Of a DNA stretch of 14,262 nucleotides, positions 1-14,262 are shown piece by piece. Origin of the DNA: Azolla caroliniana (Eukaryota; Plantae; Polypodiophyta); assembly GCA_043228905.1 (NCBI GenBank), contig JBHGNT010000884.1:1-14262 (forward strand). Reading direction: 5' to 3'. A program made the translations under genes and the position numbers. The notes under the pieces are model-generated. The model was not told the origin of the DNA and made no database searches. It saw only the letters and a program-made list of their open reading frames with translations. Positions within the stretch are counted from its first letter, which is position 1. Every line of letters starts with the position of its first letter.

Positions 1-354
1 AAGGCAAATGGGAAAGCAAGGTCGGATCGGATAAATATAGAAATAGGAATAGAATTATTAGGAGGGACGGATCCGGTAGTTGTAACCGATCCGGATCCGA
101 ACCGATTCGGTTTCGGTTAACGGTTGCCTATCGAGCACCGATTGTAATCTGGCCGGATGCCTATAAAAGGATCCGATGTTTTGTAATGAAGGGCGAAGAA
201 TTAATATAGTTTTGCTTATGCTGATTAATCTTGTCTTCGTCTGTGCTTAAGTGTAATTATCATACGCGTGTATTAACATCCTATCCCTACCACCCCTTTG
301 GAGAAGTGTCGGATAGACACCTGTGTTGCGGCTAGTCCAGCCATACATACAACA
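1..354 (+). repeat. 5' LTR of the gypsy element (5' end outside the window)
   Basis: Matches 9698-10051 with no mismatch seen by eye; ends in CAACA; followed by a TGG-starting PBS. Confidence 0.95.
162..168 (+). promoter_or_regulatory. Candidate LTR TATA box (copy at 9859-9865)
   Basis: CCTATAAAAGG in mid-LTR. Confidence 0.7.
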
Positions 355-360
355 CTATTT

Positions 361-372
361 TGGCGACCACGA
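361..372 (+). other. Primer-binding site, probably tRNA-Arg(UCG)
   Basis: TGGCGACCACGA after a 6-nt spacer (CTATTT) from the LTR end; complementary to the ...GUGGUCG-CCA 3' end of eukaryotic tRNA-Arg(UCG) as recalled. Confidence 0.8.
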
Positions 373-406
373 TTCCTGCAGAGTGCAGAGGACAACCGGG
401 GGATGG

Positions 407-3400
407 ATGTCTAGACAAAATAACGACCACATCACCGAAAGAGGGAGACGCCACGCCGAACGGCAGCGACGACGGGAAGCCCTGCAGCAAGCCGTCGACG
501 AGATCCGGCGCGATCGGTCATTCTCAAAAACGCTTCGGCAAATCGCAGAAGACGCACTGCAGTTCCAGGTTCTACAAGCTTCCGACGAAGGCAGTAGCAT
601 AACCAGCCTCCAAGAAGCGGAGACACTACTACAGACTCTCGCTGGCGGCGACGGGGACGCAGCGGCATTTGCAACATTAGAGGCGGATTCGGATAGCGGG
701 GAAAGCGTGGGATCCCGCTATAAAAGCAGCCACGAGAACAACCCCTTTGAGTCGGATCGCTCAGCAACGTCGGAGCCAGAGGAGGAAATAACTCTGGAGT
801 TCGGTGACCGGCAATCGCCGAGGAGGGAGGAGCGGATACCAACACCACCCGCGGAGGAACCGCAGGAGCGGTTATCAACACCACCCGCGGAGGAACCGCA
901 GGAGCGGAGACCGACATCGGAGGAACCAGCGCAGGAGAATCAGTGGGACGACACGATGCCGTATCCATACCCAAAGTATCGGGATGAGCCCGACGGAGAG
1001 GCACATGTGTATGCATTCCTGCGAACATGGGAAGCCAACCACGTGTCCCAGAGACTGACGGAGCCCGAGGCCGACCGATCCAAAGTCGCCGAATTCGGCA
1101 TGACATTAGAAGGACCGGCGGCCCGGTGGCACGACAAGCACTTACCAGGCAGCTTCGCCACGTTCGAGGCATTGAAAACCCAGTTTTTACGCTTGTTTCA
1201 TAGACGAGTGGAACAAAGGGAATTGGTCGGACAATTCTACACCACTCGGCAGGGAGAAAACGAGACGGTCCCACAATTTATCATTCGTTTCCAGACCTTG
1301 CACAGTCAATTAGCAAGAGCACCACCCGAAGAGGAGGCCAAGGCAGTCTTTTTGGCTGCGTTAAAAGACCCACTTCGAGCGATGTGTGGAATCCTCGATT
1401 TCAGCACCAGCACAATGGACCAAGTCATTGATCGGGTCCTGGAAATGGACAACACGAGCTCCTTCTTGCCGATGGGGGCGTTACACCAGGCTCTTCCGAA
1501 GGAGGAGGACCTCCGGTTCCGACAAGCCCTACAATGCACAACATGCCTAAATTCGGGGCACTCGACCGTCGACTGCACCCTGCGTGCACAGTGCATGATA
1601 TGCAATTCTCGCGCCCACACAACGAACCAATGCGAGTATAACCTGTTAACTCGACAAGCGGCACCGGTCCGACACATAGAACCGCGCAATCGGGACCCGG
1701 AAGAGGATCGATTCCGGAGGGACGACCGCTACCGACGAGAACGCGGCGACAGATACCCCGATAGAAGACGCGACAGCTATGACCGAGAGGAGAACCGAAG
1801 GGATAGCTACCCCCGGGACCGGTACGACCGAGACGAATCCCCGGAATACGAGCGACGCAGGGAAGAAAGGCGGCCAGGGAACCGGAATTTCCGACGGAAC
1901 CAAAGGCGTGGATTCTTCCGTAGAGAGGAGCGTCGGGAAGCAACAAGGAATGACAAACCAGTAGCGGCACCGGAGAACCGAAAAACCGAGGACAACCGCC
2001 GGGGAATGCCCTTCCCCCAAACATGGGAAAAAGGAGAATCCAGCAACACGCACAGGGTGTACTGTTATTACTGCCGAAAAGAAGGGCATTACAGTAATCA
2101 ATGCCCAAGCAAAACAGCCGACAAGCAGCCAGCAGTCAACATGGTAACAGCCGAAGTACAGCAGGTTACCACGCGGTCGAAAGGGAAGGCCGCCGAATGG
2201 GAAGCCCAGGAAGCAATCAGAAAACAAGCGGCACAATGGATCAAAGAAGCCAACGAACAAGGTGCGGCGGAAGTAAGAAACCAAAATATGCCAAGGGAGG
2301 AGGAAATCGTACAGCCAGGAGAAAACCCGACATGGCAAGCACTACAAGATTGTCAGATCGTGCTGCCGTTGGCACGGTTACTACAGTTGGTGCCGCGGTT
2401 TACAGCAGACTTACAAGCCGCCGTGAGCAAACCGACGCCGACGCCGGCACCGGCATTTTTCTCCAACCCGGAGGAAGGCCCAGCGGTGGTTGATACCAGT
2501 AGCCCAGCAATCACGACAATCGTCAAAGGAAAGGAGATTCCAGGAACAATTATTGACGGAGGCTCCGGGGTGAACGTCATTAGTCGACAGACATGCGACG
2601 ACCTAGGCATCCAGGAGTGGGAACCATGCCCCTTCTGGTTACGCATGGCGGATACAAGCTCAGTCCGACCAACGGGTCTTATCCGGGACTTGGAAGTAAC
2701 AATAGGAGGCCACGTATTCCGAATATCGGCCGTGGTACTAGAGCTGAATATACAAGGCGCATATCCCCTACTGTTAGGACGACCATGGCTGCGAACGGCG
2801 CATATCAAGCAAAACTGGCAAAAGAATATGATCACGTTCCGACGAGGGAAAACAAAGGTACGGGTAGCCACGCAACCACGGGTGCTCACTAGCAAGGAGG
2901 CAACCCCTTTATATGCCGAAAGCATCAACATGTTGGAGGGCTTACCGGATGAGGAAGTTGATCGGTACCTCGAGGAACACCCACAGATCGTCCCACTTTT
3001 TGAGGTGGATATCACGGCAACAGTAGAGCCGTACATCACAATGCCGGACGAGCCGGACAAAGTGGCGATCCGGGAACTACGCCAAGCACAGGAAGCCCTA
3101 GAAAGAGAAATGACGATATCCCAAAGGGTGAAAGCATCCCAGCTGGAAGAGGTGGACCTCGGCACAACAGAACAACCCCGACCGGTAAAAGTCGCGAAGG
3201 AATTGCCGAAGGAGGAAAAACAGGCAATGGTAGCACTGTTAACGGCTTTCAAGGACGTGTTCGCATGGTCATACGAAGACATGCGAGGGTTGGACCCCCA
3301 GCTCTACCAGCACCAAATTCATCTAAGTACTGACGCGAAACCCATCGCTCAACGTCGGTACCGGATGAATCCAAACTATGCGGCAAAGGTGAAGGAGGAA

Positions 3401-6106
3401 ATTGACAAGCTTCTCCGGGTCGGATTTATCCGACCAGTCAAGCAGGCAACCTGGCTAAGCCCGATAGTGGTGGTCCCGAAAAAGAACGGCAAAATCCGGG
3501 TATGTGTGGACTACAGGAAACTAAATGTCGCGACAGTGACCGACGCTTTTCCACTACCATTCACGGACGGAGTGCTAGATGCGGTGGCCGGCCACGAAGT
3601 TTACAGCTTCCTGGATGGATTCAGCGGCTACAACCAAATCCGAATGAACCCGGCCGACCAAGAGAAAACAGCGTTCGTGACGGAATGGGGAGTGTTCGTA
3701 GCGGTCGTGATGATGTTCGGATTAAAGACAGCCCCTGCAACATTTCAAAGGATAATTATGGAAATCTTCGGTGATTTTATTCCCGGTTTTATGCAGGTCT
3801 TCCTAGACGATTTTGCTGTCTACAGCCGACACGGAGAGCATCTCGATCACCTACGATTATGCTTAGAAAAGTGCCGCGAGTACCGATTAAGTCTGAACCC
3901 GGCTAAGTGCGTCTTTGGAGTCGCAAGCGGCAACTTGTTAGGCCACGTGGTGAGTCGGGAAGGAATCGCGGTAGATCCGGATAAGGTAAAAGCAATTCTC
4001 GACGCACCGGCACCGAATAGCGCAAAGGCTTTAAGCCGATTCCTTGGGCAAATAAGGTGGCATAGTCGGATGATAAGGCACCTTGCCGACTTTGCTACAC
4101 CATTGCACGCTGCTGTACATAGAGTACCTTTCCAATGGACAGAAACGGAGGAGAAAGCCTACCAAGCGTTGAAGGTAATGCTGTCACAAGCTCCGGTGGT
4201 GCAGCCGCCGGACTGGAGTAAAAGCTTTCACGTCTTCGTCGACGCGTCGGACGTAGCAATCGGCAGTGTTTTGATGCAACTCACGGAACCGAAATGGTAT
4301 CGGCCGGTGTACTACGCAAGCAGGAAACTCTCGAAAGCCGAACGGAACTACTCTACAACGGAACGAGAGGCATTAGGAATGGTGTACAGCGTCACAAAGT
4401 ACAGGCACTATCTGCTCGGACGAAAGTTCTCCTTCCACGTTGACCACTCGGCACTACTCTACCTGGTCTCAAAGGCAGCCCTGACAGGAAAACTCGCACG
4501 GTGGACGCTGCTATTACAGGAATTCGAATTCGACATTTTCCACCGACCCGGGGTGCAGCATGCGGTAGCAGACTACCTGAGCAGACTAGAATCCGGAGAA
4601 TCAGGGGACGGCGTACAGGACGAATTTCCTGACGCCGAGCTATTTAAGGTCACGACGGCACCGGCAACGGAGACCACAGTAGCGGACGAAGACAAATGGT
4701 TAACCGAAATGCATCAGTTCCTGAGCACCGGAGTTCCCCCGGAAAACCTGGACCGAGACGAACGGAAAAGGATGGCAGTACGGAGCAGACATTTCTGCTT
4801 GGTAGGAGACACCCTCTATCATAAGGGGGCAGATGGCGTATGGAGGCGAGCAGTGCGGAGCGATGAAAAGGATCTGATCCTGAGGGAAGCCCACTGTGGA
4901 ATTGCAGGCGGGCATTATGCCGGCGAAACAACAGCCCGGAAGATATGGCAGAGCGGACTATGGTGGCCGACTACCATGAGAGATGCCGTTAAGTATAGCA
5001 GGGAATGCGACCTGTGTCAACGACTGGGCCAACCCACGGAGCAGGCCCGGATGCCACATCACCCGGTCTTGCCATTAGAACCATTCCAAAAGTGGGGCTT
5101 GGACTTTGTCGGCCCCTTTAAGCCACCGGCAATGCGGACCGGAAATCGGTATATAATAGTGGCTACCGACTACTGCACCAAATGGGTAGAAGCAAAGGCA
5201 CTACGGGACAACACGGCGGCGTCCACGGCCAAATTTTTATATGAATGCATATGGTGTCGGTACGGATGCCCGATTGAGCTGATCAGTGACCAGGGAGGAC
5301 ATTTCCTCGGGCAGGTGGTGGAAAGTTTGACATCATTCTATGCGGTAGTACACAAACGAAGCACTCCCTACTACCCTCAAGCCAACGGATTAGCGGAATC
5401 AACAAACAAAACGCTACAGAACATCCTTAGAAAAATCGTCAATGAGAACCGGACCGACTGGGACACGAAGTTGCAGAGCGTGCTGTGGGCGTACCGAACG
5501 GCGTACAAGACTAGCATCCGGACGACCCCGTTCCGACTGGCATTCGGCTTGGAAGCAGTCATGCCAGTAGAATTCCAAATTCCTAGCTTAAGAATACAGG
5601 TTAAGGAGCGGTTAAGCGAGAAGGAATCGGAACGAATCCGGCTGAAGATGCTGTTAGAACTGGAAGAAAATCGAATAGCCAGCCTGCTACAGCTAGAACT
5701 AGAGCAAAGGAGGAGGAAAGCCTTTGTAGACCGACACCGCCGCGGTAACGAAAAGGAATTCGAGGTCGGGAAACCTGTATTACTGTTCCAGACAAGGATG
5801 GGGAGCATGCCAGGGAAATTGCGATTTCGGTGGACCGGACCATTCTGGATCACAAAGGAGTACAATGGGTCTTACCAGCTCGGGACGTTGTCAGGAGAAG
5901 TTGTGGGCAAATGGGCAAATGGTTTTCGCCTAAAACCGTATAAGGGGCACATGCCAGCTAACCCCTTCAAGCAAGAACCGGACATCCTGAATGGCGAGGA
6001 ACCGACACAGATACGGAGGACCGAGGAGCCGACACCGACGCGTAACAACGAGGAACCGACAACAGTGCGCACCGACCCGAACACATCGGGGGGAACCGAA
6101 CAATGA
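407..6106 (+). CDS. gag-pol: Gag-Pol polyprotein (1899 aa from the first in-frame ATG): Gag, 3 CCHC knuckles, aspartic protease, RT, RNase H, integrase
   Basis: Uninterrupted ORF. CX2CX4HX4C at 1535-1576, 1592-1633 and 2063-2104; protease IDGGS (D at 2555); RT CVDYRKLN, FLDGFSGYNQI, MFGLKTAPATFQ and FLDD (3800-3811); RNase H VDAS..TERE..DH..ADYLSR; integrase H-X6-H..CDLC, GLDF, SDQG, NGLAE and GPF. Confidence 0.97.
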   Translation: MSRQNNDHITERGRRHAERQRRREALQQAVDEIRRDRSFSKTLRQIAEDALQFQVLQASDEGSSITSLQEAETLLQTLAGGDGDAAAFATLEADSDSGESVGSRYKSSHENNPFESDRSATSEPEEEITLEFGDRQSPRREERIPTPPAEEPQERLSTPPAEEPQERRPTSEEPAQENQWDDTMPYPYPKYRDEPDGEAHVYAFLRTWEANHVSQRLTEPEADRSKVAEFGMTLEGPAARWHDKHLPGSFATFEALKTQFLRLFHRRVEQRELVGQFYTTRQGENETVPQFIIRFQTLHSQLARAPPEEEAKAVFLAALKDPLRAMCGILDFSTSTMDQVIDRVLEMDNTSSFLPMGALHQALPKEEDLRFRQALQCTTCLNSGHSTVDCTLRAQCMICNSRAHTTNQCEYNLLTRQAAPVRHIEPRNRDPEEDRFRRDDRYRRERGDRYPDRRRDSYDREENRRDSYPRDRYDRDESPEYERRREERRPGNRNFRRNQRRGFFRREERREATRNDKPVAAPENRKTEDNRRGMPFPQTWEKGESSNTHRVYCYYCRKEGHYSNQCPSKTADKQPAVNMVTAEVQQVTTRSKGKAAEWEAQEAIRKQAAQWIKEANEQGAAEVRNQNMPREEEIVQPGENPTWQALQDCQIVLPLARLLQLVPRFTADLQAAVSKPTPTPAPAFFSNPEEGPAVVDTSSPAITTIVKGKEIPGTIIDGGSGVNVISRQTCDDLGIQEWEPCPFWLRMADTSSVRPTGLIRDLEVTIGGHVFRISAVVLELNIQGAYPLLLGRPWLRTAHIKQNWQKNMITFRRGKTKVRVATQPRVLTSKEATPLYAESINMLEGLPDEEVDRYLEEHPQIVPLFEVDITATVEPYITMPDEPDKVAIRELRQAQEALEREMTISQRVKASQLEEVDLGTTEQPRPVKVAKELPKEEKQAMVALLTAFKDVFAWSYEDMRGLDPQLYQHQIHLSTDAKPIAQRRYRMNPNYAAKVKEEIDKLLRVGFIRPVKQATWLSPIVVVPKKNGKIRVCVDYRKLNVATVTDAFPLPFTDGVLDAVAGHEVYSFLDGFSGYNQIRMNPADQEKTAFVTEWGVFVAVVMMFGLKTAPATFQRIIMEIFGDFIPGFMQVFLDDFAVYSRHGEHLDHLRLCLEKCREYRLSLNPAKCVFGVASGNLLGHVVSREGIAVDPDKVKAILDAPAPNSAKALSRFLGQIRWHSRMIRHLADFATPLHAAVHRVPFQWTETEEKAYQALKVMLSQAPVVQPPDWSKSFHVFVDASDVAIGSVLMQLTEPKWYRPVYYASRKLSKAERNYSTTEREALGMVYSVTKYRHYLLGRKFSFHVDHSALLYLVSKAALTGKLARWTLLLQEFEFDIFHRPGVQHAVADYLSRLESGESGDGVQDEFPDAELFKVTTAPATETTVADEDKWLTEMHQFLSTGVPPENLDRDERKRMAVRSRHFCLVGDTLYHKGADGVWRRAVRSDEKDLILREAHCGIAGGHYAGETTARKIWQSGLWWPTTMRDAVKYSRECDLCQRLGQPTEQARMPHHPVLPLEPFQKWGLDFVGPFKPPAMRTGNRYIIVATDYCTKWVEAKALRDNTAASTAKFLYECIWCRYGCPIELISDQGGHFLGQVVESLTSFYAVVHKRSTPYYPQANGLAESTNKTLQNILRKIVNENRTDWDTKLQSVLWAYRTAYKTSIRTTPFRLAFGLEAVMPVEFQIPSLRIQVKERLSEKESERIRLKMLLELEENRIASLLQLELEQRRRKAFVDRHRRGNEKEFEVGKPVLLFQTRMGSMPGKLRFRWTGPFWITKEYNGSYQLGTLSGEVVGKWANGFRLKPYKGHMPANPFKQEPDILNGEEPTQIRRTEEPTPTRNNEEPTTVRTDPNTSGGTEQ
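829..907 (+). repeat. 36-bp in-frame tandem duplication in the Gag N-terminus (TPPAEEPQER x2)
   Basis: CAACACCACCCGCGGAGGAACCGCAGGAGCGG at 840-871 and 876-907. Confidence 0.9.
5996..6076 (+). repeat. 3 x 27-bp degenerate repeat in the integrase C-terminal tail (EEPTxxRxx)
   Basis: GAGGA(A/G)CCGACA at 5996, 6023 and 6050. Confidence 0.8.
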
Positions 6107-6123
6107 TGCGGCATATGTTTAAA

Positions 6124-6150
6124 AATAAAATTAAAAAAAAAAAAAAAAAA
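6124..6150 (+). other. AATAAA plus A18 tract just after the gag-pol stop
   Basis: AATAAA 6124-6129; A run 6133-6150. Function is inferred. Confidence 0.6.
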
Positions 6151-6392
6151 GAATGACGTGGAGCTACGGGTAGAAAAGTCAAGACAAGAAGATCAAGAAA
6201 ATCATGGTAATGATGAAGGAAGTAGTTACAACCGTCACACGGGTGCACGAGCTATTTAAAGCACAGAACGTGGGGGCGCCGATGTACAGGATTTAAAACG
6301 CGCGTCAATTAAGGAGTCATAATGACAGACACGTAGGAGATTCGACACACGCGGCAAAGAAGCACAAGCATGACACGCGGCAGCAAAGGACA

Positions 6393-6491
6393 GACATACT
6401 ATTCATGACACAGCATGCGCAGGCGCCAAAAATAGGACATGCTATTCATGACACAGCATGCGCAGGCGCCAAAAATAGGACATGCTATTCA
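6393..6491 (+). repeat. 43-bp tandem repeat (~2.3 copies) in the inter-ORF region
   Basis: CTATTCATGACACAGCATGCGCAGGCGCCAAAAATAGGACATG at 6399 and 6442; partial copy at 6485. Confidence 0.92.
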
Positions 6492-6590
6492 AGGCAGAAC
6501 ACGTGCAGCCGTCAAAATTAAAGAGTGACATGCTAATTATGGCAGGGGACGCGCGAAAAACAGGAAAAGGCGGCTCGAGGGAAACGCCAC

Positions 6591-6598
6591 TATATAAA
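6591..6598 (+). promoter_or_regulatory. Candidate internal TATA box for ORF2
   Basis: CTATATAAAGG, followed 20-45 nt later by a pyrimidine-rich patch and then a strong-context ATG at 6734; G-box CACGTG at 6500-6505. Confidence 0.6.
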
Positions 6599-6733
6599 GG
6601 AAGAACCGGGGAAGGGTTCACTTTTTACGAATTTTCCCACAAGCAAACGCAGGCTCAAGACAGCAAGATCCGACGCGCAGAACACCTACACCCCGACCTC
6701 AGACCACAGGCAGCAGCAGACGAAGAAGAAGCG

Positions 6734-9631
6734 ATGGCACTGTCGGACGGAGCGCGACAATGGCTGACGGAGAACGGATTAGGAGGGCTGCTGCGGGTCG
6801 CTGACGCGCCACCACACAAGGAACTAGAGCAGGCGGCAACAGCGGTGGACTTAGCAGAGGTCACTGAAGGAGCGGTACAAGCGCTCACAGGGATTTCGGA
6901 GGGAGGACTTCAGACGATAGAGCTACCCTCGAGCCAAATATTCTTCGAGTATTTCGGCGAATACTCCCTTAGCAGCAAGGCGTATCGCACACAGGGCGGA
7001 GAGAACCTGCTGTTCGGAGAGGTGGCCCGCGCCCTGATGGAGTACGGGTTCGTGAACCCTCGTCCGGCAGCCATAGCCAAATACCGAGCAGCGATCGTCA
7101 TCGCGACATTCGAAGGCCTGCAGGTGGACTGGCTCCATTTCATCACCGAAGGACTGAAAGAGGCGATCAAGCACTTAGTGGAAGGGAAGAAGCCATGGGC
7201 CGGAATATCCCAATGGTTAACAGTGTTGGTCCCACCGGTGTCCCCCATCAAGCACAAGCAAAGAAGTCGGCAGGAGACTACCCCGAAGCAAACCATGAAG
7301 CGCCGACGAATCCTAGAGAAACACACTCCAGGATGGACGCGGGAAGAAGGATCATCCCGACAGCCGCGGAAAGAAGGCTCATCTCGACAATCGCGGGAAG
7401 AAGACTCATCCCGACAGCAAAGGGAGGAAGGCCCATCATGGCAGCCACAGAAACAGCAACAGCAACCGACAACGAAGAAGAAAAAGGTGGAAAAAGGCAA
7501 GGAGAAGCTGGCAAAGAAGACCAGCAAGAGGCAAACCGACACCGAACCAGTAACGCTCGAATCGGAACCGGTACCAGTAAAGGAACCAATAGTGGCACCG
7601 ACGGAGGACGTTGAAACAGAGGAAGACTCATCCGAACCGATGTTAATACTACCACCCAGGCAAGGAAAGGAGAAACGAGCGACAAGACCGACCCCAACAG
7701 CGGACGGAACTCAGCAACGGGCAAAAGAACCGCCTCCAGTAACCGGAACAGAAGCGACACAGGATGAAGGTCCGTCTGCACCAAAGACGGCAGTACCGGA
7801 ACCGACGGCGGCGGAGTTCGAGGAACAAAGAAAGGAACAAGCGCCGGAACAAGAGAAGAGGCCGGAGAAACAGCCGGAAAAACAGCCGGAGCTAGGCACG
7901 CCTGCTGACACCAACGAAGGCAGAACAAAGGCACAATGGCTAAGGTGGTTGTCAGGGCAGTTGTCGGGAGTAGCAGACCAGATGGAGAAAGAGGAGGAGC
8001 AAAGGGAAGAAGTGACTAGGACGACGACTAAAGATATGGTCAGGCTCCGGGCACAATTACATGAGCTGCAAGAAGAGCTAGCACAGGCAAAAGAAGGCAG
8101 CCGACAAGCACAAGATGGCACCGAGCCGGTCGGGACATCAGAAAAGCAAGCCGAACCAGAAACGGAGAGGGCCTTGCAAACCGGCCCTGAGACCGAGAAG
8201 TTAATAGCAACTTTGAAAGAAGAATTACAGGCTCAGGAGGCATTGAGAGATAACGAAAGAGAACAGCGGAAGTTGGTAGAAGACGACAGACGGCGAATGG
8301 AGGAAGGCCTTCGCCGAAGCAAAGCCACCAATGACCGACTACAAGAAGAAAACGGGACACTGCAAAAGGAAAAAGATAGGCTGCGCCGACGAATGGAGCA
8401 GGAAATTGAGCGGTTGCGAGAGGAACTCCGACAACAAAAGGACCGGGATGATCAGTTGCGAGCTCAGGCGAACCGACGCCTAAAACAGAAGACGGAGGAA
8501 TTCGACAGACTATGTAAGGATTATAAACAGGCCACGTCGGACATCAAGAATCAGGCAGCAACGTACGACCGACAGATAGAGAAGCTGAAAGAGCAGCTCA
8601 AGGAAAACCGCTTGGAATTGTCCAAAGCAAGGGAGGAAGTATCGGCGGAGAAGACCTTGACGTCGGAACAAAGAAAGGAGATGGAAGTACTTCGGCAGAA
8701 AGTAGGGGAGCTGACAAAGAGCAGGAATGAGGAGAAAGTGAAGTTGACTTTCGAAATCAACAAATGGCGGAGTACCTGTGACAAGCAAAAAGTCGACTCT
8801 GAAGCTCAAGCTCAGTTAATGGCCGACATCATCAAACGGATAAGGAAGGAAAAACAAGCAGCTTCGGAACAGGCTAAAGCAGGGGTTGGCCGAATTAAGT
8901 TCATCATGTCAAGTTGGAGTACCCGAGCTCAGGCCAGCATAAATGAAAGCACGGAGAAACTCTGGAAGGAATGGGCACAACAGGCAGCTGAACTGCAGAT
9001 ACTCCGAGCTGATGCAGAAAATCGGAAGAAAAACGGAGATGGGTTCTATAAAATGGACGAAGAAAGTATCGTCAACATCCGGGAAGAACTGTCGGAGGAT
9101 TTCTATGCTCTAGCAGAAGAGCATCTCAAGGAAATCCGAGGGTTAGTAGAGAGGTTGGATGACGGACAGCTCGAAACCCAACTAGAATTGGAAGGGTACG
9201 AGAAGGACCGACTGCGACAGGAAGCCGAGGGACACACAACGCCGATCTCCATTAGTGAGGGCGAGCGACCGGCTGAAGAGGATCCAACCAACAATGCACC
9301 CCGACAAGAATTACCCGAGGAAGAACTTCCGGAGCAAGAGCAGGTTGATGCCGGGGATGATGCAGAGTGGAGACAGCGAAGTACCGAATCCGGGGAGGAA
9401 AGGACACAACCAGTGGAAACCGGAGAGAGCGATACCGGGAACGGAACGGAGGTAGAGCAGGACAGACCCGGACAGGATACAGAAGAAACACCGGTACTAC
9501 CGGTAGAAGCAGAGTCGGAGCAGCAAGATGCGAAAAGGCAGCCAATCCAATCGGAAGTCGGAGACGGCACAGGCAAAACAACACTTGAAACCTCTGAGCG
9601 GAGTTTGCTGGATAATTTGGAGGAAGACTGA
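6734..9631 (+). CDS. Accessory ORF2 (965 aa; frame open from 6482): N-terminal globular domain, disordered repeats, basic NLS-like patch, long coiled coil, acidic tail; function unknown
   Basis: Long stop-free ORF between integrase and the 3' LTR; start chosen at GCGATGGC downstream of the TATA; E/K/R/Q heptad-like region ~7930-9225; KKKK at 7475-7486; no signal peptide or clear transmembrane helix seen. Confidence 0.85.
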   Translation: MALSDGARQWLTENGLGGLLRVADAPPHKELEQAATAVDLAEVTEGAVQALTGISEGGLQTIELPSSQIFFEYFGEYSLSSKAYRTQGGENLLFGEVARALMEYGFVNPRPAAIAKYRAAIVIATFEGLQVDWLHFITEGLKEAIKHLVEGKKPWAGISQWLTVLVPPVSPIKHKQRSRQETTPKQTMKRRRILEKHTPGWTREEGSSRQPRKEGSSRQSREEDSSRQQREEGPSWQPQKQQQQPTTKKKKVEKGKEKLAKKTSKRQTDTEPVTLESEPVPVKEPIVAPTEDVETEEDSSEPMLILPPRQGKEKRATRPTPTADGTQQRAKEPPPVTGTEATQDEGPSAPKTAVPEPTAAEFEEQRKEQAPEQEKRPEKQPEKQPELGTPADTNEGRTKAQWLRWLSGQLSGVADQMEKEEEQREEVTRTTTKDMVRLRAQLHELQEELAQAKEGSRQAQDGTEPVGTSEKQAEPETERALQTGPETEKLIATLKEELQAQEALRDNEREQRKLVEDDRRRMEEGLRRSKATNDRLQEENGTLQKEKDRLRRRMEQEIERLREELRQQKDRDDQLRAQANRRLKQKTEEFDRLCKDYKQATSDIKNQAATYDRQIEKLKEQLKENRLELSKAREEVSAEKTLTSEQRKEMEVLRQKVGELTKSRNEEKVKLTFEINKWRSTCDKQKVDSEAQAQLMADIIKRIRKEKQAASEQAKAGVGRIKFIMSSWSTRAQASINESTEKLWKEWAQQAAELQILRADAENRKKNGDGFYKMDEESIVNIREELSEDFYALAEEHLKEIRGLVERLDDGQLETQLELEGYEKDRLRQEAEGHTTPISISEGERPAEEDPTNNAPRQELPEEELPEQEQVDAGDDAEWRQRSTESGEERTQPVETGESDTGNGTEVEQDRPGQDTEETPVLPVEAESEQQDAKRQPIQSEVGDGTGKTTLETSERSLLDNLEED
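7340..7447 (+). repeat. 4 x 27-bp in-frame repeat in ORF2 (REEGSSRQP-like)
   Basis: Units start at 7340, 7367, 7394 and 7421. Confidence 0.88.
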
Positions 9632-9663
9632 AGCCGGCTGTGGGTTCGAAGTGCAATGCACTT

Positions 9664-9679
9664 TCCCACGGGCGTGCCA
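9664..9679 (-). other. Second, inverted PBS-like site (tRNA-Arg(UCU)-like) at the position normally occupied by the PPT
   Basis: The minus strand reads CAACA-CA-TGGCACGCCCGTGGGA from the 3' LTR start; the plus strand reads as a tRNA 3' end finishing in CCA (9677-9679). Confidence 0.7.
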
Positions 9680-9681
9680 TG

Positions 9682-10051
9682 TGTTGGCCGGTCAGAGAAG
9701 GCAAATGGGAAAGCAAGGTCGGATCGGATAAATATAGAAATAGGAATAGAATTATTAGGAGGGACGGATCCGGTAGTTGTAACCGATCCGGATCCGAACC
9801 GATTCGGTTTCGGTTAACGGTTGCCTATCGAGCACCGATTGTAATCTGGCCGGATGCCTATAAAAGGATCCGATGTTTTGTAATGAAGGGCGAAGAATTA
9901 ATATAGTTTTGCTTATGCTGATTAATCTTGTCTTCGTCTGTGCTTAAGTGTAATTATCATACGCGTGTATTAACATCCTATCCCTACCACCCCTTTGGAG
10001 AAGTGTCGGATAGACACCTGTGTTGCGGCTAGTCCAGCCATACATACAACA
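9682..10051 (+). repeat. 3' LTR of the gypsy element (370 bp, TGTTG...CAACA)
   Basis: 9698-10051 repeats 1-354; start placed at TGTTG (9682) from the 5-bp terminal inverted repeat with CAACA. The start cannot be confirmed against the clipped 5' LTR. Confidence 0.88.
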
Positions 10052-10409
10052 CTCACAACTATTCTGTTCTACTTACAATCTTTGTTTTCCCTAAGTGTAT
10101 TTATACTCATACACTGTATGGGTTATTTACAAACGTAGCCACTACTACTGTCATTCCTATTATAACAATAGTAGTTATTCAGCCGACAGATCAACTAGTC
10201 GATTCGACTAGTTGACTCCAGTGTCGACTGTCTAGTCGGCCTGACTAGTCGTCCTTATCTTCGACCATCCGGTCGGCCCGACTAGTTGGTTGTGTCTTCG
10301 ACTTGGACTCTCCTACTGTCGACTCCCCAAGTCGACTCTCCATGTCTTTGACTATCGGCACTCGGCCCGATCAGTCAACTGCTCCCATAGGAGGGACATA
10401 TTCCTAACA
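10052..10409 (-). repeat. Partial 3' LTR of the copia element (cut by the gypsy insertion)
   Basis: Minus strand AAGGGGGAG-TT-TGTTAGG; TATAAATA on the minus strand at 10098-10105. Confidence 0.8.
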
Positions 10410-10411
10410 AA

Positions 10412-10420
10412 CTCCCCCTT
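10412..10420 (-). other. Polypurine tract of the copia element
   Basis: AAGGGGGAG, 2 nt before the LTR TG and directly after the RNase H C-terminus. Confidence 0.85.
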
Positions 10421-13400
10421 CACTCCTATGGGTGGAGTCGGTCAGTTTTTTCCTCTGTCGACAGACTCTAAGTCTGTCCATCGATAGGTTCTTTGTCAGC
10501 ATGTCAGATCCATTGTTGTTAGTATGGATCTTTACCACGGTAAAATCTTCTTCTTCCACTTGTTATCTCTACTCCGAGATAACACCTTCGATTACTTCTA
10601 AGGTAATCGGGTCAAGGGGTCGTGGTATGTAGTGGTGGACAAGAAACTCGGGATTGCACCGCTAGTTGATTACGAAAACAGTCAGCCACAACCGGCCCTG
10701 TAAATTTTACTTGAAATTAGGATACCAAATCCAAATAACACAGATAGATTCTTGAACAGATTTGACCCACAAAGATAGATGTATTAATAGATTCAGATGC
10801 AAAAGTTACACTACTCACGGCCGGAGTTTTATTCTCATACAATCAAACATATAGCTGTAATCCTCTCTAGACTAGGGTATAACTCTCCCTCTATTCGTCT
10901 TCTCCCCCCTTTCTAGTGATTCTGCTCCTCATTTTATAGCTTCCCTCTTGGTGCACTTCAGTCAATCCTTTCTTCTCGGCCTTCATTCTCGGTTGCACGT
11001 ATTCCATTAGCTTCCTCATTCTCAATTGTCATTTTTCACCTACTTTACCTACTCGTATCCTTAGATTCGTTTCACATTGTATCCTTTTTGTCCCATGGAT
11101 AACACCACTTTCTCCCGCAACCAGTGATACCTTCTTTGTATGTGCTTGGTTCGGGAGTGGTACGCAGAATTCTGCAGTCGTGACTGCCACGACACTACTC
11201 CCCCTTCATAGGTCATCACGTACCCTAAAGTGGATCGGCTTGAGTCTGCATCCCCCGACATGTCTGAGTCGGTAAACCCCTCGAGCATGGGTTTTCCAAC
11301 ACCTTACCTAAGGCACACACCCGAGGTGCCTTTTAAGTACTTGAGTATCCATTTTACAGTTGCACAATGTTCTCTGCCTGGATTACTCATGTATCGGCTT
11401 ACTACTCCCACAGCAAATGCTATGTTTGGCCTCGTACATACCATAGCATACATTAAATTGTCGACGGTTGAGGCATATGATACTTTCTTCATCTCAACCT
11501 TCTATTTCTCTCCTCTTGGGCTTTGCTTGGCATTCAGGTTGCGGTTGGTTGGCAACACAGAGTCGTCTGGCTTTGCATCTAACATGTTAAACCTCACCAA
11601 GATCCTTGTCACATACTTCGCTTGTGACAGACACAACACTTTCTTAGTTCTCTCCCGAACTATGTGCATCCCTAAGATCCGTTTTTCCGGTCCAAGATCT
11701 TTCATGGAAAACGACTTGCCTAATGCTTTCTTCAAGCTCACGATCTTCTTCGTGTCTTGTCCGACTATCAACATGTCATCCACATATAGCAAGAGAATTA
11801 AGAAGTCACCTTCATCGTACCTTTTGACGAACACACAATGATCAACATGTGTTTTCTGGAACCTATGTTCCACCATGAAGGACTCAAACTTCTTGTACCA
11901 TTGGCGTGGAGTTTGATTCAACCCATACAAGCTTTTCTTCAGTCGACACATCGGGCTCTCTTTCCCTTTCTCCACAAACCCCTTGGGTTGCGGCATATAG
12001 ATCTCTTCATCCAGCTCCCCATGCAAGAATGTTGTCTTGACATCCAATTGTTCGATTTCCAAGTCCATACTCGGAACAATGCTCGGAACAGTTCAGATGG
12101 ATGTTATCTTCACGACTGGTGCGAATATTTCATCGAAGTCGACACCTTTTTTCTATTGGAACCCCTTCACCACAATGCAGGCTTTAAATCTGGGTGTGTT
12201 GTCGACTTCTCCAGTCTTCACCTTGTAGACCCATTTGTTTCTAAGCGCTCTTTTACCTTTTTGTAGTTCTACCAGGTCATAGGTGTAGTTCTCATGCAAG
12301 GAGTCCATTTCATCTTGCATCGCGCTCAGTCATTTCTCCTTATGCTCATTAGCTATGGATTCTTCATAGCACTCCGGCTCACCATCATCAGTCAAGAGGA
12401 TGTATTGACTGGCATATGTCATCAATGATCTCCTTTCTCTGAGTGGGTATCTCCTTCCACTCGTTGTCGACTCAAGTTCGGATGTCTCTGTCGACTCTAC
12501 TCTTAGCTCGGATTCATATGTGTCGATCGATCATTGGGGTTTAGTCGATTCCAACTCGTAGTCCTCGATCGACTTCAATAGATCTGCCAACTCTGACTCA
12601 TTTGTATTTGTCGGTTGCTCTAAGTCCATCGACTCGGATTCTGTTGTGCCGACTGGCTATCTCCAAACAACCGACTGTGTCGGTTCACTTCTCCTTAAGT
12701 TGGTAGTAGTGGGAGTAGATTGGGAAGTTGATTCATACTTCTGTTGCTTCTAGTCCTCTATTGTCTTGTCTTCCAAGAAGACTACATCCCGACTCCTCAC
12801 TACCTTCTTGTCGACTAGGTCCCACAGCCTGTAGCCGAACTCGTCCTTCGGGTATCCCATGACTATGCATGGTTTCGACTTACTATCGAGCTTCGACCTC
12901 TGATCCTTAGCCACATGCATATATACTAAACATCCAAACACCCTCAGGTGTCGGTCGGAGACATCTTCTATCAACTCAAGGGTCTTTGGTACAATATATT
13001 TGATTCGAATATCCTGGGCCTTACAGTATTCCTCAAACTGCCCTTTATATTTGCCACCATTGTCGGTTCTGGCAGCCTTCAGTTTCCGACCCGACTCTCG
13101 TTCGGTTCTTTCCTTGAACTCCTTGAACATTGACAGTACCTGATCCTTTGTCGTCTGTACGAAGACCCACGTCTTCCGACTATGGTCATCAATAAATGTC
13201 ACGAAGTATTGTCCACCTCAATGTGATGGAGCATCTACATAGCACACATCTGTGTGCACTAGTTCCAATGCAACCTCTCTTCTTCTTGGTTGACTTGTGT
13301 GGAATGCTACCCTGTTCTGCTTTCCGACTAAGCAGTCGACACACTTCTCCAAGTTTACTCCTTTCTCTTCTAGGAGAAGCTCCTAGTCGGCTAGGATGTG

Positions 13401-13699
13401 CATTCCTTTTTCACTCATGTGGTCAAGCCTCTTATGCCATAACTCTCCACTCGAGTCGGCTGCCACATTCACCTCCGACTTGCATAGCCGGTCATGCATC
13501 ATATACAGTGTGCCTTCTTTATGTGCTCTTACCACTATGAGGTTGCCACAACAGAACTTTCACTTGTCGTTTCGGAAGCTACCATTGTAGCCTTCGTCAT
13601 TCAATCTTCCAGTCGATATCAGATTCAATCTTATATCGGGGACATGTCGACCTTCCCTCAGTATCAATCAACAACCAGTCGATGTTGTCAAGCACAAGC
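10421..13699 (-). pseudogene. pol: Copia pol pseudogene (protease C-terminus, integrase, RT, RNase H)
   Basis: RHVPDIRLNLIS; LWHKRLDHMS; LELVHTDV; TFIDDHSR; RTDNGG; LRVFGC; QLDVKTTFLHG; LKKSLYGL; YVDD (11775-11786); TDSD; HSRTKHI; KIHT..SDMLTK. Contains internal stops, deletions and a solo LTR insertion. Confidence 0.93.
10561..11104 (-). mobile_element. Solo LTR (544 bp) with 5-bp TSD CCACT
   Basis: TGTTATC...GATAACA termini; CCACT at 10556-10560 and 11105-11109; removal restores the RNase H reading WLREKVEEEDF; orientation inferred from TATAAAA on the minus strand at 10932-10938. Confidence 0.92.
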
Positions 13700-14262
13700 T
13701 GTGGTGAAGATTTTCGGCAATAGTGTGAAAATCCCATAAAACGTACAAAATCGAGTATGAATCATGTAATACAATAATTGTGAAGATAACATTTTTAATA
13801 TCTAAGTACAAAATGATGGAGGTTTCGAATGCACTTTATTACACGAGAAATGGACAACTAAATGTCAAGATATGAGGGTATAAAGTTTGTGAAAAGAAAA
13901 GAGAAAATTGTGAGATATCCCACATAGGCACGACAAATACGGCTCTCATCATATATAAGGTGGAGCAAAAGATACTATCTTTGTGTCTATGTGTGGAGCA
14001 TAGAGAGTTCAAGGTAACTTGAACTTAGAGTGGAGGTGGCTAGCTACTCGTAAAGGGTTTTGGCCAACCAAAACCGGACCGGCGATGGAGCCGGTGATCC
14101 GACGGCATCCGACCGCAATCCGGTGGCGGCATGCGGCACCGGTATCCGGTGTCGGCATCCGGCGACGACATCCGGTGTCGGTATCCGGCGTCGGCATCCA
14201 GTGTCGGTATCCGGCGTCGGCATCCGGCGTCGGCATCCGACGTCGGCGGCAGCATCCAGCGT
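13700..14262 (+). mobile_element. Probable further insertion (LTR-like start) interrupting the copia protease; runs off the window
   Basis: Copia homology (LCLTTSTGC) stops at ~13699; the new sequence begins TGTGG, is AT-rich and non-coding, and has TATATAAG at 13952-13959. The other end and TSD are not visible. Confidence 0.5.
14113..14262 (+). repeat. 13-bp GC-rich tandem array, consensus TCGG(C/T)ATCCGG(C/T)G, ~11 copies, truncated by the window end
   Basis: Clear units at 14139, 14152, 14165, 14178, 14191, 14204, 14217 and 14230; degenerate units at 14113, 14126 and after 14243. Confidence 0.9.

Follow-up and report, generated by a model that had tools for sequence, protein, structure and literature searches.

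What primes the plus strand of a long terminal repeat (LTR) retrotransposon that has no polypurine tract (PPT) in front of its 3' LTR? The question is raised by a 14,262-nt stretch of Azolla caroliniana DNA (contig JBHGNT010000884.1 of assembly GCA_043228905.1, positions 1 to 14,262 of the forward strand; hereafter the window), which holds one Ty3/gypsy LTR retrotransposon on the + strand. To our knowledge, plus-strand priming from a PPT is regarded as common to all retroviruses, LTR retrotransposons and pararetroviruses, and LTR-annotation software uses the PPT as a diagnostic feature. In the established retroviral mechanism the left edge of the unique 3' region (U3) of the LTR is fixed by the 3' end of the plus-strand primer, and therefore something ending at or near positions 9679-9681 of the window must prime. 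In the place of the PPT our analysis revealed a block (9639-9681) derived from tRNA-Arg(UCU). Because of its position, its conservation and the presence of nothing else there, this block is probably the determinant of plus-strand priming, and we would put the probability of this reading at about 0.65-0.7.

The junction before the 3' LTR

The segment between the end of the second open reading frame (ORF) of the element, ORF2, and the 3' LTR is composed of the following features.

9619..9627, + strand: purine run GGAGGAAGA, in the last codons of ORF2 (acidic C-terminus), 54 nt from the LTR; no PPT
9639..9649, + strand: copy of tRNA nucleotides 48-58, TGTGGGTTCGA, comprising the 5' strand of the T stem and the T loop to A58; 11/11 identical to tRNA-Arg(TCT) genes
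9650..9663, + strand: insert at tRNA position 59, a 13-nt mini-hairpin AGTGC-AAT-GCACT (9650-9662) followed by T
9664..9679, + strand: copy of tRNA nucleotides 60-65 (TCCCAC, 9664-9669) and 67-76 (GGGCGTGCCA, 9670-9679), with nucleotide 66 missing and the untemplated CCA at the end
9680..9681, + strand: 2-nt spacer TG between CCA and the LTR, invariant in the family of the window's element and in L003, a copy from a second family; CG in the decayed copy L040 of the latter
9682..10051, + strand: 3' LTR, 370 bp, TGTTG...CAACA

The 20 nt in front of the 3' LTR (9662-9681) read TTTCCCACGGGCGTGCCATG, and TGTTG follows from 9682. Purines make up 50, 53, 40 and 43% of the last 10, 15, 20 and 30 nt in front of it, respectively. 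No purine run of at least 6 nt was found within 100 nt of the 3' LTR besides GGAGGAAGA at 9619-9627, and none abuts the LTR. The GGAGGAAGA run varies between relatives in the manner of coding sequence (GGACGAAGA, GGATGAAGA, GAAAGAAGA). An earlier note on this DNA had stated that no PPT precedes the 3' LTR, and with 40-53% purine over the last 10-30 nt this is borne out. Among the features expected of a Ty3/gypsy element, direct LTRs, the order gag-reverse transcriptase (RT)-RNase H-integrase and a 5' primer-binding site (PBS) are present, and a PPT abutting the 3' LTR is absent.

The 41 bases at 9639-9679 are an interrupted sense copy of the 3' part of tRNA-Arg(UCU), nucleotides 48-76. Altogether 27 of the 41 bases match tRNA-Arg(TCT) genes in order, with the non-gene-encoded CCA present. 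Since CCA is absent from tRNA genes, the source of the block should be a mature tRNA or a PBS copied from one, and no tRNA gene. The identity of the tRNA was derived from a scan of metagenome contigs for the T arm and acceptor strand, which yielded >120 loci; ARAGORN called tRNA-Arg(TCT) in most of the 38 loci scanned with it. More than 25 tRNA-Arg(TCT) genes confirm the identity, their 3' part reading ...(A/G)(T/C)TGTGGGTTCGAGTCCCAC(C/T)GGGCGTG, to which CCA is added post-transcriptionally. The mini-hairpin is placed exactly after A58, the tRNA base at which reverse transcriptases normally stop.

On the minus strand the block presents TGGCACGCCC (10 nt) and, past a 1-nt gap, GTGGGA, which are complementary to the 3' end of tRNA-Arg including CCA. 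The primer-like CCA end thus lies exactly 2 nt from the TG of the LTR. The match to plant tRNA-Arg(UCU) named in the earlier note agrees with the tRNA-Arg(TCT) genes and is longer than stated there, with the T loop to A58 and the 5' side of the T stem included as well. A eukaryotic tRNA that matches the segment together with its CCA does exist, and the structural reading, by which an inward-facing tRNA-type site stands at both LTR boundaries, holds. As the complement of a tRNA 5' end, the block shows just 9 matches, compared with 27 for the sense 3' part, and this assignment was rejected.

The block does not represent a foldable tRNA. Both ARAGORN and Rfam returned 0 matches on it, with no cloverleaf and no known RNA family; ARAGORN found no tRNA anywhere in the window, and the block holds only tRNA nucleotides 48-76. 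A stable imperfect hairpin begins 8 nt past the stop codon of ORF2. This hairpin would suit some other function in cis, with the plus strand primed in an unrecognised way: the block could bind RT, nucleocapsid or a host tRNA-binding protein for packaging, bridge the 5' and 3' parts of the genome, or control the expression of ORF2. We consider such a function improbable. The predicted RNA fold of the region is no better than that of shuffled sequence (z = -1.15), the DNA fold likewise, the cloverleaf searches were empty, and a primer abutting U3 would still be needed where nothing else is present.

The boundary of the LTR decides whether the block is internal to the element. Contigs of four public DNA runs, from four studies and under two organism labels, were aligned on 9100-10400, and those of two subfamilies begin exactly at 9682 in two of the runs, as expected of a de Bruijn graph where left contexts diverge. 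A diverged and CpG-decayed relative, L130 (gag 47% identical), retains a 5' LTR together with ~750 nt of genuine upstream flank. Its alignment to the window's LTR starts exactly at TGTTGGC, and the DNA upstream is unrelated and AT-rich, with no trace of the block. As sequence evidence, this copy is decisive for an LTR start at 9682, the start that the earlier note had assumed. The alternative start at TG 9629, after GGAGGAAGA, is ruled out by the same flank and by the contig starts. At the other end, the relative L129 carries a real 3' LTR followed by flank; it ends ...CATACAACA, then TGAAG. Since TG stands there after CAACA, the CT that follows CAACA in the window is flank and was rejected as part of the LTR, whose right end is CAACA. 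Taken together, L130, L129 and the contig starts place the LTR at 9682-10051 and make the block an internal feature, present once per element. The related copies all come from short-read assemblies with collapsed LTRs, so that the boundary can be read from L129 and L130 but, for most junction contigs, not from the contig taken singly. In L130 (750-1225) CpG has decayed to TpG/CpA, the PBS reading TGGTGACCATGA and the LTR start TGTTGGCCAG, as expected for methylated plant repeats.

On the minus strand the junction has the geometry of a canonical PBS, and from this mirror geometry the earlier note had proposed, as an alternative, that antisense transcripts are reverse-transcribed from the block as a true minus-strand PBS. 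Nothing beyond the geometry speaks for this. The LTRs are direct repeats of the TG...CA type with short inverted termini (TGTTG at 9682, CAACA to 10051). The TATA box of the 3' LTR (about 9859-9866), the repeat (R) and unique 5' (U5) regions and the 5' PBS are all oriented on the + strand. In the established mechanism an antisense RNA would furthermore be without the terminal R repeats for strand transfer. We therefore regard this alternative as unsupported and extremely improbable.

Conservation of the block in two families

The sole sources of ORF2 relatives were metagenome assemblies of ENA and JGI. Nine copies of the window's family could be read across the junction (L001, L002 twice, L123, L125, L126, L127, L128 and L129). 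Their ORF2 proteins are 56-98% identical to that of the window, and they differ in their LTRs and in the 7-10 bases that lead from the stop codon to the block. From TGTGGG through CCA, TG and the first 15 bases of the LTR, all nine are the same except for base 9657, the third base of the mini-hairpin loop, which is T, A, G or C among relatives. In the aligned contigs 9657 T>G is the sole block variant reported, and it is the majority there. In the four runs 9628-9715 is covered 8-60 times as deeply as the end of ORF2 and 5-10 times as deeply as the LTR bin that follows; hence, many more elements share the block than share this ORF2 or this LTR body. By these comparisons the block is the most conserved non-coding part of the element. 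The block is carried by 9/9 related copies and by a second family, and none has a normal PPT in that place, as the conservation check proposed in the earlier note would have it. Scans of IMG/VR for the junction, the split block and ORF2 relatives found nothing.

The block of the second family, which we call Z, was found in L003 and L040, on the minus strands of contigs that share an ENA study series with the others. Its layout is an ORF2-like C-terminus (..ILEED*), a T-rich spacer, TTTGGGTCCGA, the mini-hairpin CGGAC-AAG-GTCCT, G, TCCCAC, GGGCGTGCCA, TG and an LTR beginning TGTTGTCC. Family Z shares with the window's family the deletion of nucleotide 66, the position of CCA 2 nt from the LTR and the AAN loop. 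The core of its mini-hairpin differs from that of the window by two compensatory changes (T-A to G-C and G-C to A-T). On the alignment, two pairs changed on both sides, a count matched by 10/500 shuffles, which provides modest covariation support for the mini-hairpin from one diverged sequence. The segment corresponding to tRNA nucleotides 60-65 and 67-76 is invariant across 11 copies of both families with the sole exception of one decayed copy; in L040, TCA replaces CCA. The acidic C-terminal motif of ORF2 (..LEED*) is retained even in family Z.

The 5' PBS of family Z is itself complementary to tRNA-Arg(UCU), far past 18 nt; it takes in 33 nt in L040 and ~50 nt in L101, and in L003 and L079 all 76 nt of the tRNA. 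Thus, the lineage already employs this tRNA as a primer, and the overlong PBS suggests a reverse transcriptase that frequently reads on through it. Judged by both families, the block is a homologous, lineage-wide feature, and it is the 5' PBS that changed between them. The complementarity of the Z block to the 5' PBS of Z itself would make cyclisation of the genome possible, in line with a bridging function of the block in cis. In the window's element, by contrast, the block and the 5' PBS pair over no more than 5 bp (by inspection), so that cyclisation is not general.

The long PBS copies of the same tRNA (33-76 nt in L040, L101, L003 and L079) are also a possible source of the block, which might then be a tolerated relic without a role, i.e., an inverted LTR-end/PBS fragment left by an ancestral fold-back or recombination. 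The minus strand indeed reads exactly LTR end, 2 nt and PBS. A relic would hardly be expected to stay invariant across families whose surrounding non-coding DNA has diverged, or to show compensatory changes in its hairpin, and the copies are young and intact and are without any other primer. We therefore give a relic a rather small chance. An origin by inversion is compatible with a present function; inversion of an LTR-end/PBS fragment would give a working tRNA site at once.

Several further arrangements were observed in the contigs of family Z. L003:1-1266 (minus strand) resembles a deletion derivative in which the PBS is joined to the C-terminal part of the ORF2-like gene. L079:1-2055 is a tandem array of ~540-bp units, each made up of one Z LTR and a full-length, CCA-ended copy of tRNA-Arg(UCU); the array resembles an amplified junction of the 2-LTR-circle type that retains the primer tRNA, or an LTR-derived satellite. 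L040, L079 and L101 were also considered as forward relatives with an uninterrupted tRNA copy before the LTR, and were rejected as such, as BLAST against L003 identified them as ordinary LTR-end/PBS junctions in reverse orientation.

Candidate primers for the plus strand

If the block is the priming determinant, the primer itself may be a host tRNA-Arg(UCU) acting in trans, annealed to minus-strand DNA; this is the mechanism we favour, tentatively and at somewhat less than even odds. The tRNA reads in the + sense, which leaves minus-strand DNA as its sole possible partner. Once minus-strand cDNA has been made, RNase H would strip the template and expose 5'-TGGCACGCCC-3' beside a small DNA hairpin. 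The 3' end of the host tRNA, GGGCGUGCCA-OH, would anneal there with nucleotide 66 bulged, and the pairing may reach into TCCCAC and the T-arm copy. Reverse transcriptase would then extend the tRNA through TG into U3, RNase H would take off the tRNA as it does at the 5' PBS, and integrase would trim the 2 extra bases, a number usual for LTR termini, leaving TGTTG as the LTR end. The predicted pairing energy of the last 11 tRNA nucleotides at the block is -24.2 kcal/mol, compared with -23.9 kcal/mol for the 12-nt 5' PBS, both values from RNA parameters that are an approximation for an RNA/DNA duplex. In the predicted fold of the minus-strand DNA the hairpin beside the 10-nt stretch is kept, and the stretch itself is partly paired.

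Several observations weigh against a tRNA in trans. The block sequence is also present in the RNA of the element, which is paired with minus-strand DNA from the outset; a primer in cis is therefore kinetically simpler. The conserved deletion of nucleotide 66 caps perfect pairing with the tRNA at 10 nt. In family Z the T-arm copy is just 9/11 identical to the tRNA, so that an extended bipartite pairing is not strictly maintained. The stem of the mini-hairpin has no counterpart in the tRNA and is nevertheless as invariant in the window's family as the tRNA-derived parts, which means that constraints beyond tRNA pairing act on the block. Furthermore, the tRNA genes used for comparison come from metagenome contigs and not from the host genome.

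In the other leading mechanism a segment of the element's genomic RNA, ...CCCACGGGCGUGCCA(UG), would resist RNase H, be cleaved behind CCA or behind UG, and then prime in the manner of a PPT. The cut could be made in cis through the tRNA-removal specificity acting on the same duplex, or an RNA 5' end set by the hairpin could measure it, and a host tRNA would be unneeded. Position, conservation and the missing PPT fit a primer in cis equally well. It has the advantage of an RNA already annealed at the site, and it makes the deletion of nucleotide 66, the invariant non-tRNA hairpin and the imperfect T-arm copy of family Z easier to accept. It also suits the history of the window's family, in which the 5' PBS switched to another tRNA while the block stayed unchanged. 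What a primer in cis leaves unexplained is the exact tRNA 3' end with CCA and, in the window's family, the 11/11 copy of the T arm; an RNase H specificity for a non-purine primer is not known from the literature searched. On balance we rate a primer in cis as a close rival, only somewhat less probable than the tRNA in trans. The proposal of the earlier note that a second host tRNA primes the plus strand therefore stands in part: geometry and pairing energy fit it, but an RNA primer in cis explains most of the same facts. That both strands are primed by host tRNAs in an active Ty3/gypsy lineage, with the PPT and its RNase H specificity dispensed with, is accordingly put forward as a possibility only, for which we would not claim an even chance.

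The two leading mechanisms can be told apart by their primers, as the host tRNA has nucleotide 66 and G59 and is without the 13-nt insert, and the element RNA is the reverse. If the favoured reading is true, a widespread and recently active PPT-less lineage would show that the step of plus-strand priming can be solved differently. It would also offer a natural system for how RT and RNase H choose primers, and a second step of retrotransposon replication would become tied to tRNA pools or fragments of tRNAs.

The block can be compared with several known systems. It occupies the place of a PPT, directly before U3 of the 3' LTR, shares its conservation with the opening bases of that LTR and presumably does the same job of setting the 5' end of the plus strand; it differs from a PPT in being 40-53% purine, tRNA-derived, CCA-ended and preceded by a hairpin. 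A canonical PBS is resembled by the minus strand, which reads CAACA, 2 nt and TGG..., is complementary to a tRNA 3' end and has a similar pairing energy. Unlike such a site, the block belongs to the opposite LTR and strand, and its tRNA would pair with minus-strand DNA instead of genomic RNA. A 13-nt hairpin at tRNA position 59 interrupts the block, and nucleotide 66 is missing from it. The yeast Ty3 element reportedly has a bipartite 5'-3' PBS (Gabus et al. 1998), the 3' part of which pairs with the primer tRNA on the RNA. This Ty3/gypsy genome, too, carries a sequence related to a tRNA at its 3' end, near the region of the plus-strand primer, but that sequence is complementary to the tRNA, whereas the block is of the same sense.

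In Tf1/sushi elements the minus strand is self-primed from the 5' end of the element's own RNA. The replacement of a host-derived primer by the element's RNA resembles the mechanism in cis; in contrast to Tf1/sushi, at most 5 bp can be formed, by inspection, between the block's tail, GGGCGUGCCA, and UGGCGACCACGA, and complementarity to the element's own PBS is met only in family Z. TRNA-like structures with CCA at the 3' terminus are known from plant RNA viruses and the Mauriceville retroplasmid. They too are CCA-ended tRNA mimics tied to the initiation of copying, as is proposed here; they stand at the RNA 3' terminus and have a tRNA-like fold, whereas the block is internal, ~370 nt before the LTR end, and forms no cloverleaf. 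Helenus, a group of terminal-repeat retrotransposons in miniature (TRIMs), has inside the LTR a tRNA-like sequence that acts as a pol III promoter, next to an ordinary PBS and PPT (PMC10886601). Helenus has in common with the element described here a tRNA-derived sequence in an LTR element. The block differs from that of Helenus and of TRIMp3 in lying outside the LTR, in containing the 3' part only and no whole unit with A and B boxes, in its CCA end and in the absence of a PPT.

With regard to the tRNA itself, TGGCACGCCCAGT stands after an LTR-like CAACA in a printed Capsicum sequence and looks like an ordinary PBS (PMC10211496), and minus-strand priming by tRNA-Arg(UCU) accordingly seems nothing unusual in plants. 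The PBS types of plant lineages have been discussed by Neumann et al. 2019 (PMC6317226), and loss of the PPT has not been discussed there. Full-text literature searches, whose coverage mostly excludes subscription journals, returned no description of a tRNA-derived, CCA-ended sequence in the position of a PPT. The earlier note knew of no described natural example, and the literature searches brought up none either. The arrangement suggests plus-strand priming of a kind not described before.

Layout of the element and the rest of the window

The remaining features of the element are as follows.

1..354, + strand: 5' LTR without its first 16 nt, which fall outside the window, as do the 5' flank and with it any target-site duplication; CAACA end at 350-354
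361..372, + strand: conventional minus-strand PBS TGGCGACCACGA, 12 nt, 6 nt past the CAACA end of the 5' LTR, conserved in relatives
407..6106, + strand: gag-pol ORF, 1900 aa, open; gag, zinc knuckle, RT, RNase H and integrase
6482..9631, + strand: ORF2, 1049 aa, open; accessory protein, stop codon TGA at 9629-9631

The overlapping parts of the LTRs (1-354 and 9698-10051) are identical at 354/354 positions. With identical LTRs and open ORFs, the element is by sequence a recently active one. The Pfam domains of gag-pol follow one another as Retrotrans_gag, zf-CCHC, RVT_1, RT_RNaseH, Integrase_H2C2 and rve, which is the Ty3/gypsy order. A Pfam search with ORF2 returned no family, only a weak sub-threshold match to the coiled-coil DUF4200. 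Fifty nucleotides separate the stop of ORF2 from the start of the 3' LTR (9631 to 9682). Exact-protein look-ups with the window's own ORFs revealed no recorded gene with identical products. In the spacer between pol and ORF2, 3-4 tandem copies of a 43-nt unit were observed (6367-6569), and the predicted start of ORF2 at 6482 lies inside this array.

The 12-mer TGGCGACCACGA is listed as the Arg-type (disputed as Trp) PBS of HERV9 (PMC4724089). A search for the plant tRNA behind this 5' PBS gave no match among the fetched loci or in IMG/VR. A hairpin, CTGCA-GAG-TGCAG, lies at 376-388, 3 nt past the 5' PBS, and is conserved in most relatives. Considering also the mini-hairpin of the block, both primer sites have a short hairpin on the inner side.

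Within the LTR, depth peaks at 9848-9891, the region of the TATA box, and at 9980-10023, a segment ending ...CCACCCCTTTGGAGAAGTGTCGGATAGACACCTGTGTTG; these are LTR parts common to many families. The gypsy element is surrounded by repeat-rich DNA, and contig depth remains high past the LTR end. The stretch at 10180-10400 is rich in short palindromes (GACTAGTCGAC-type motifs) with many differing contig joints that skip 37-115 nt, and is probably a variable minisatellite or a repeat resembling a miniature inverted-repeat transposable element (MITE). A decayed Ty1/copia element was observed on the minus strand at 11505-13202, with RVT_2 at 11505-12068 and an integrase core and SH3-like domain at 12753-13202. 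Ten copies of a 13-nt tandem repeat, ATCCGGCGTCGGC, organised in a 26-nt higher-order unit, occupy 14118-14259 and reach the end of the window.

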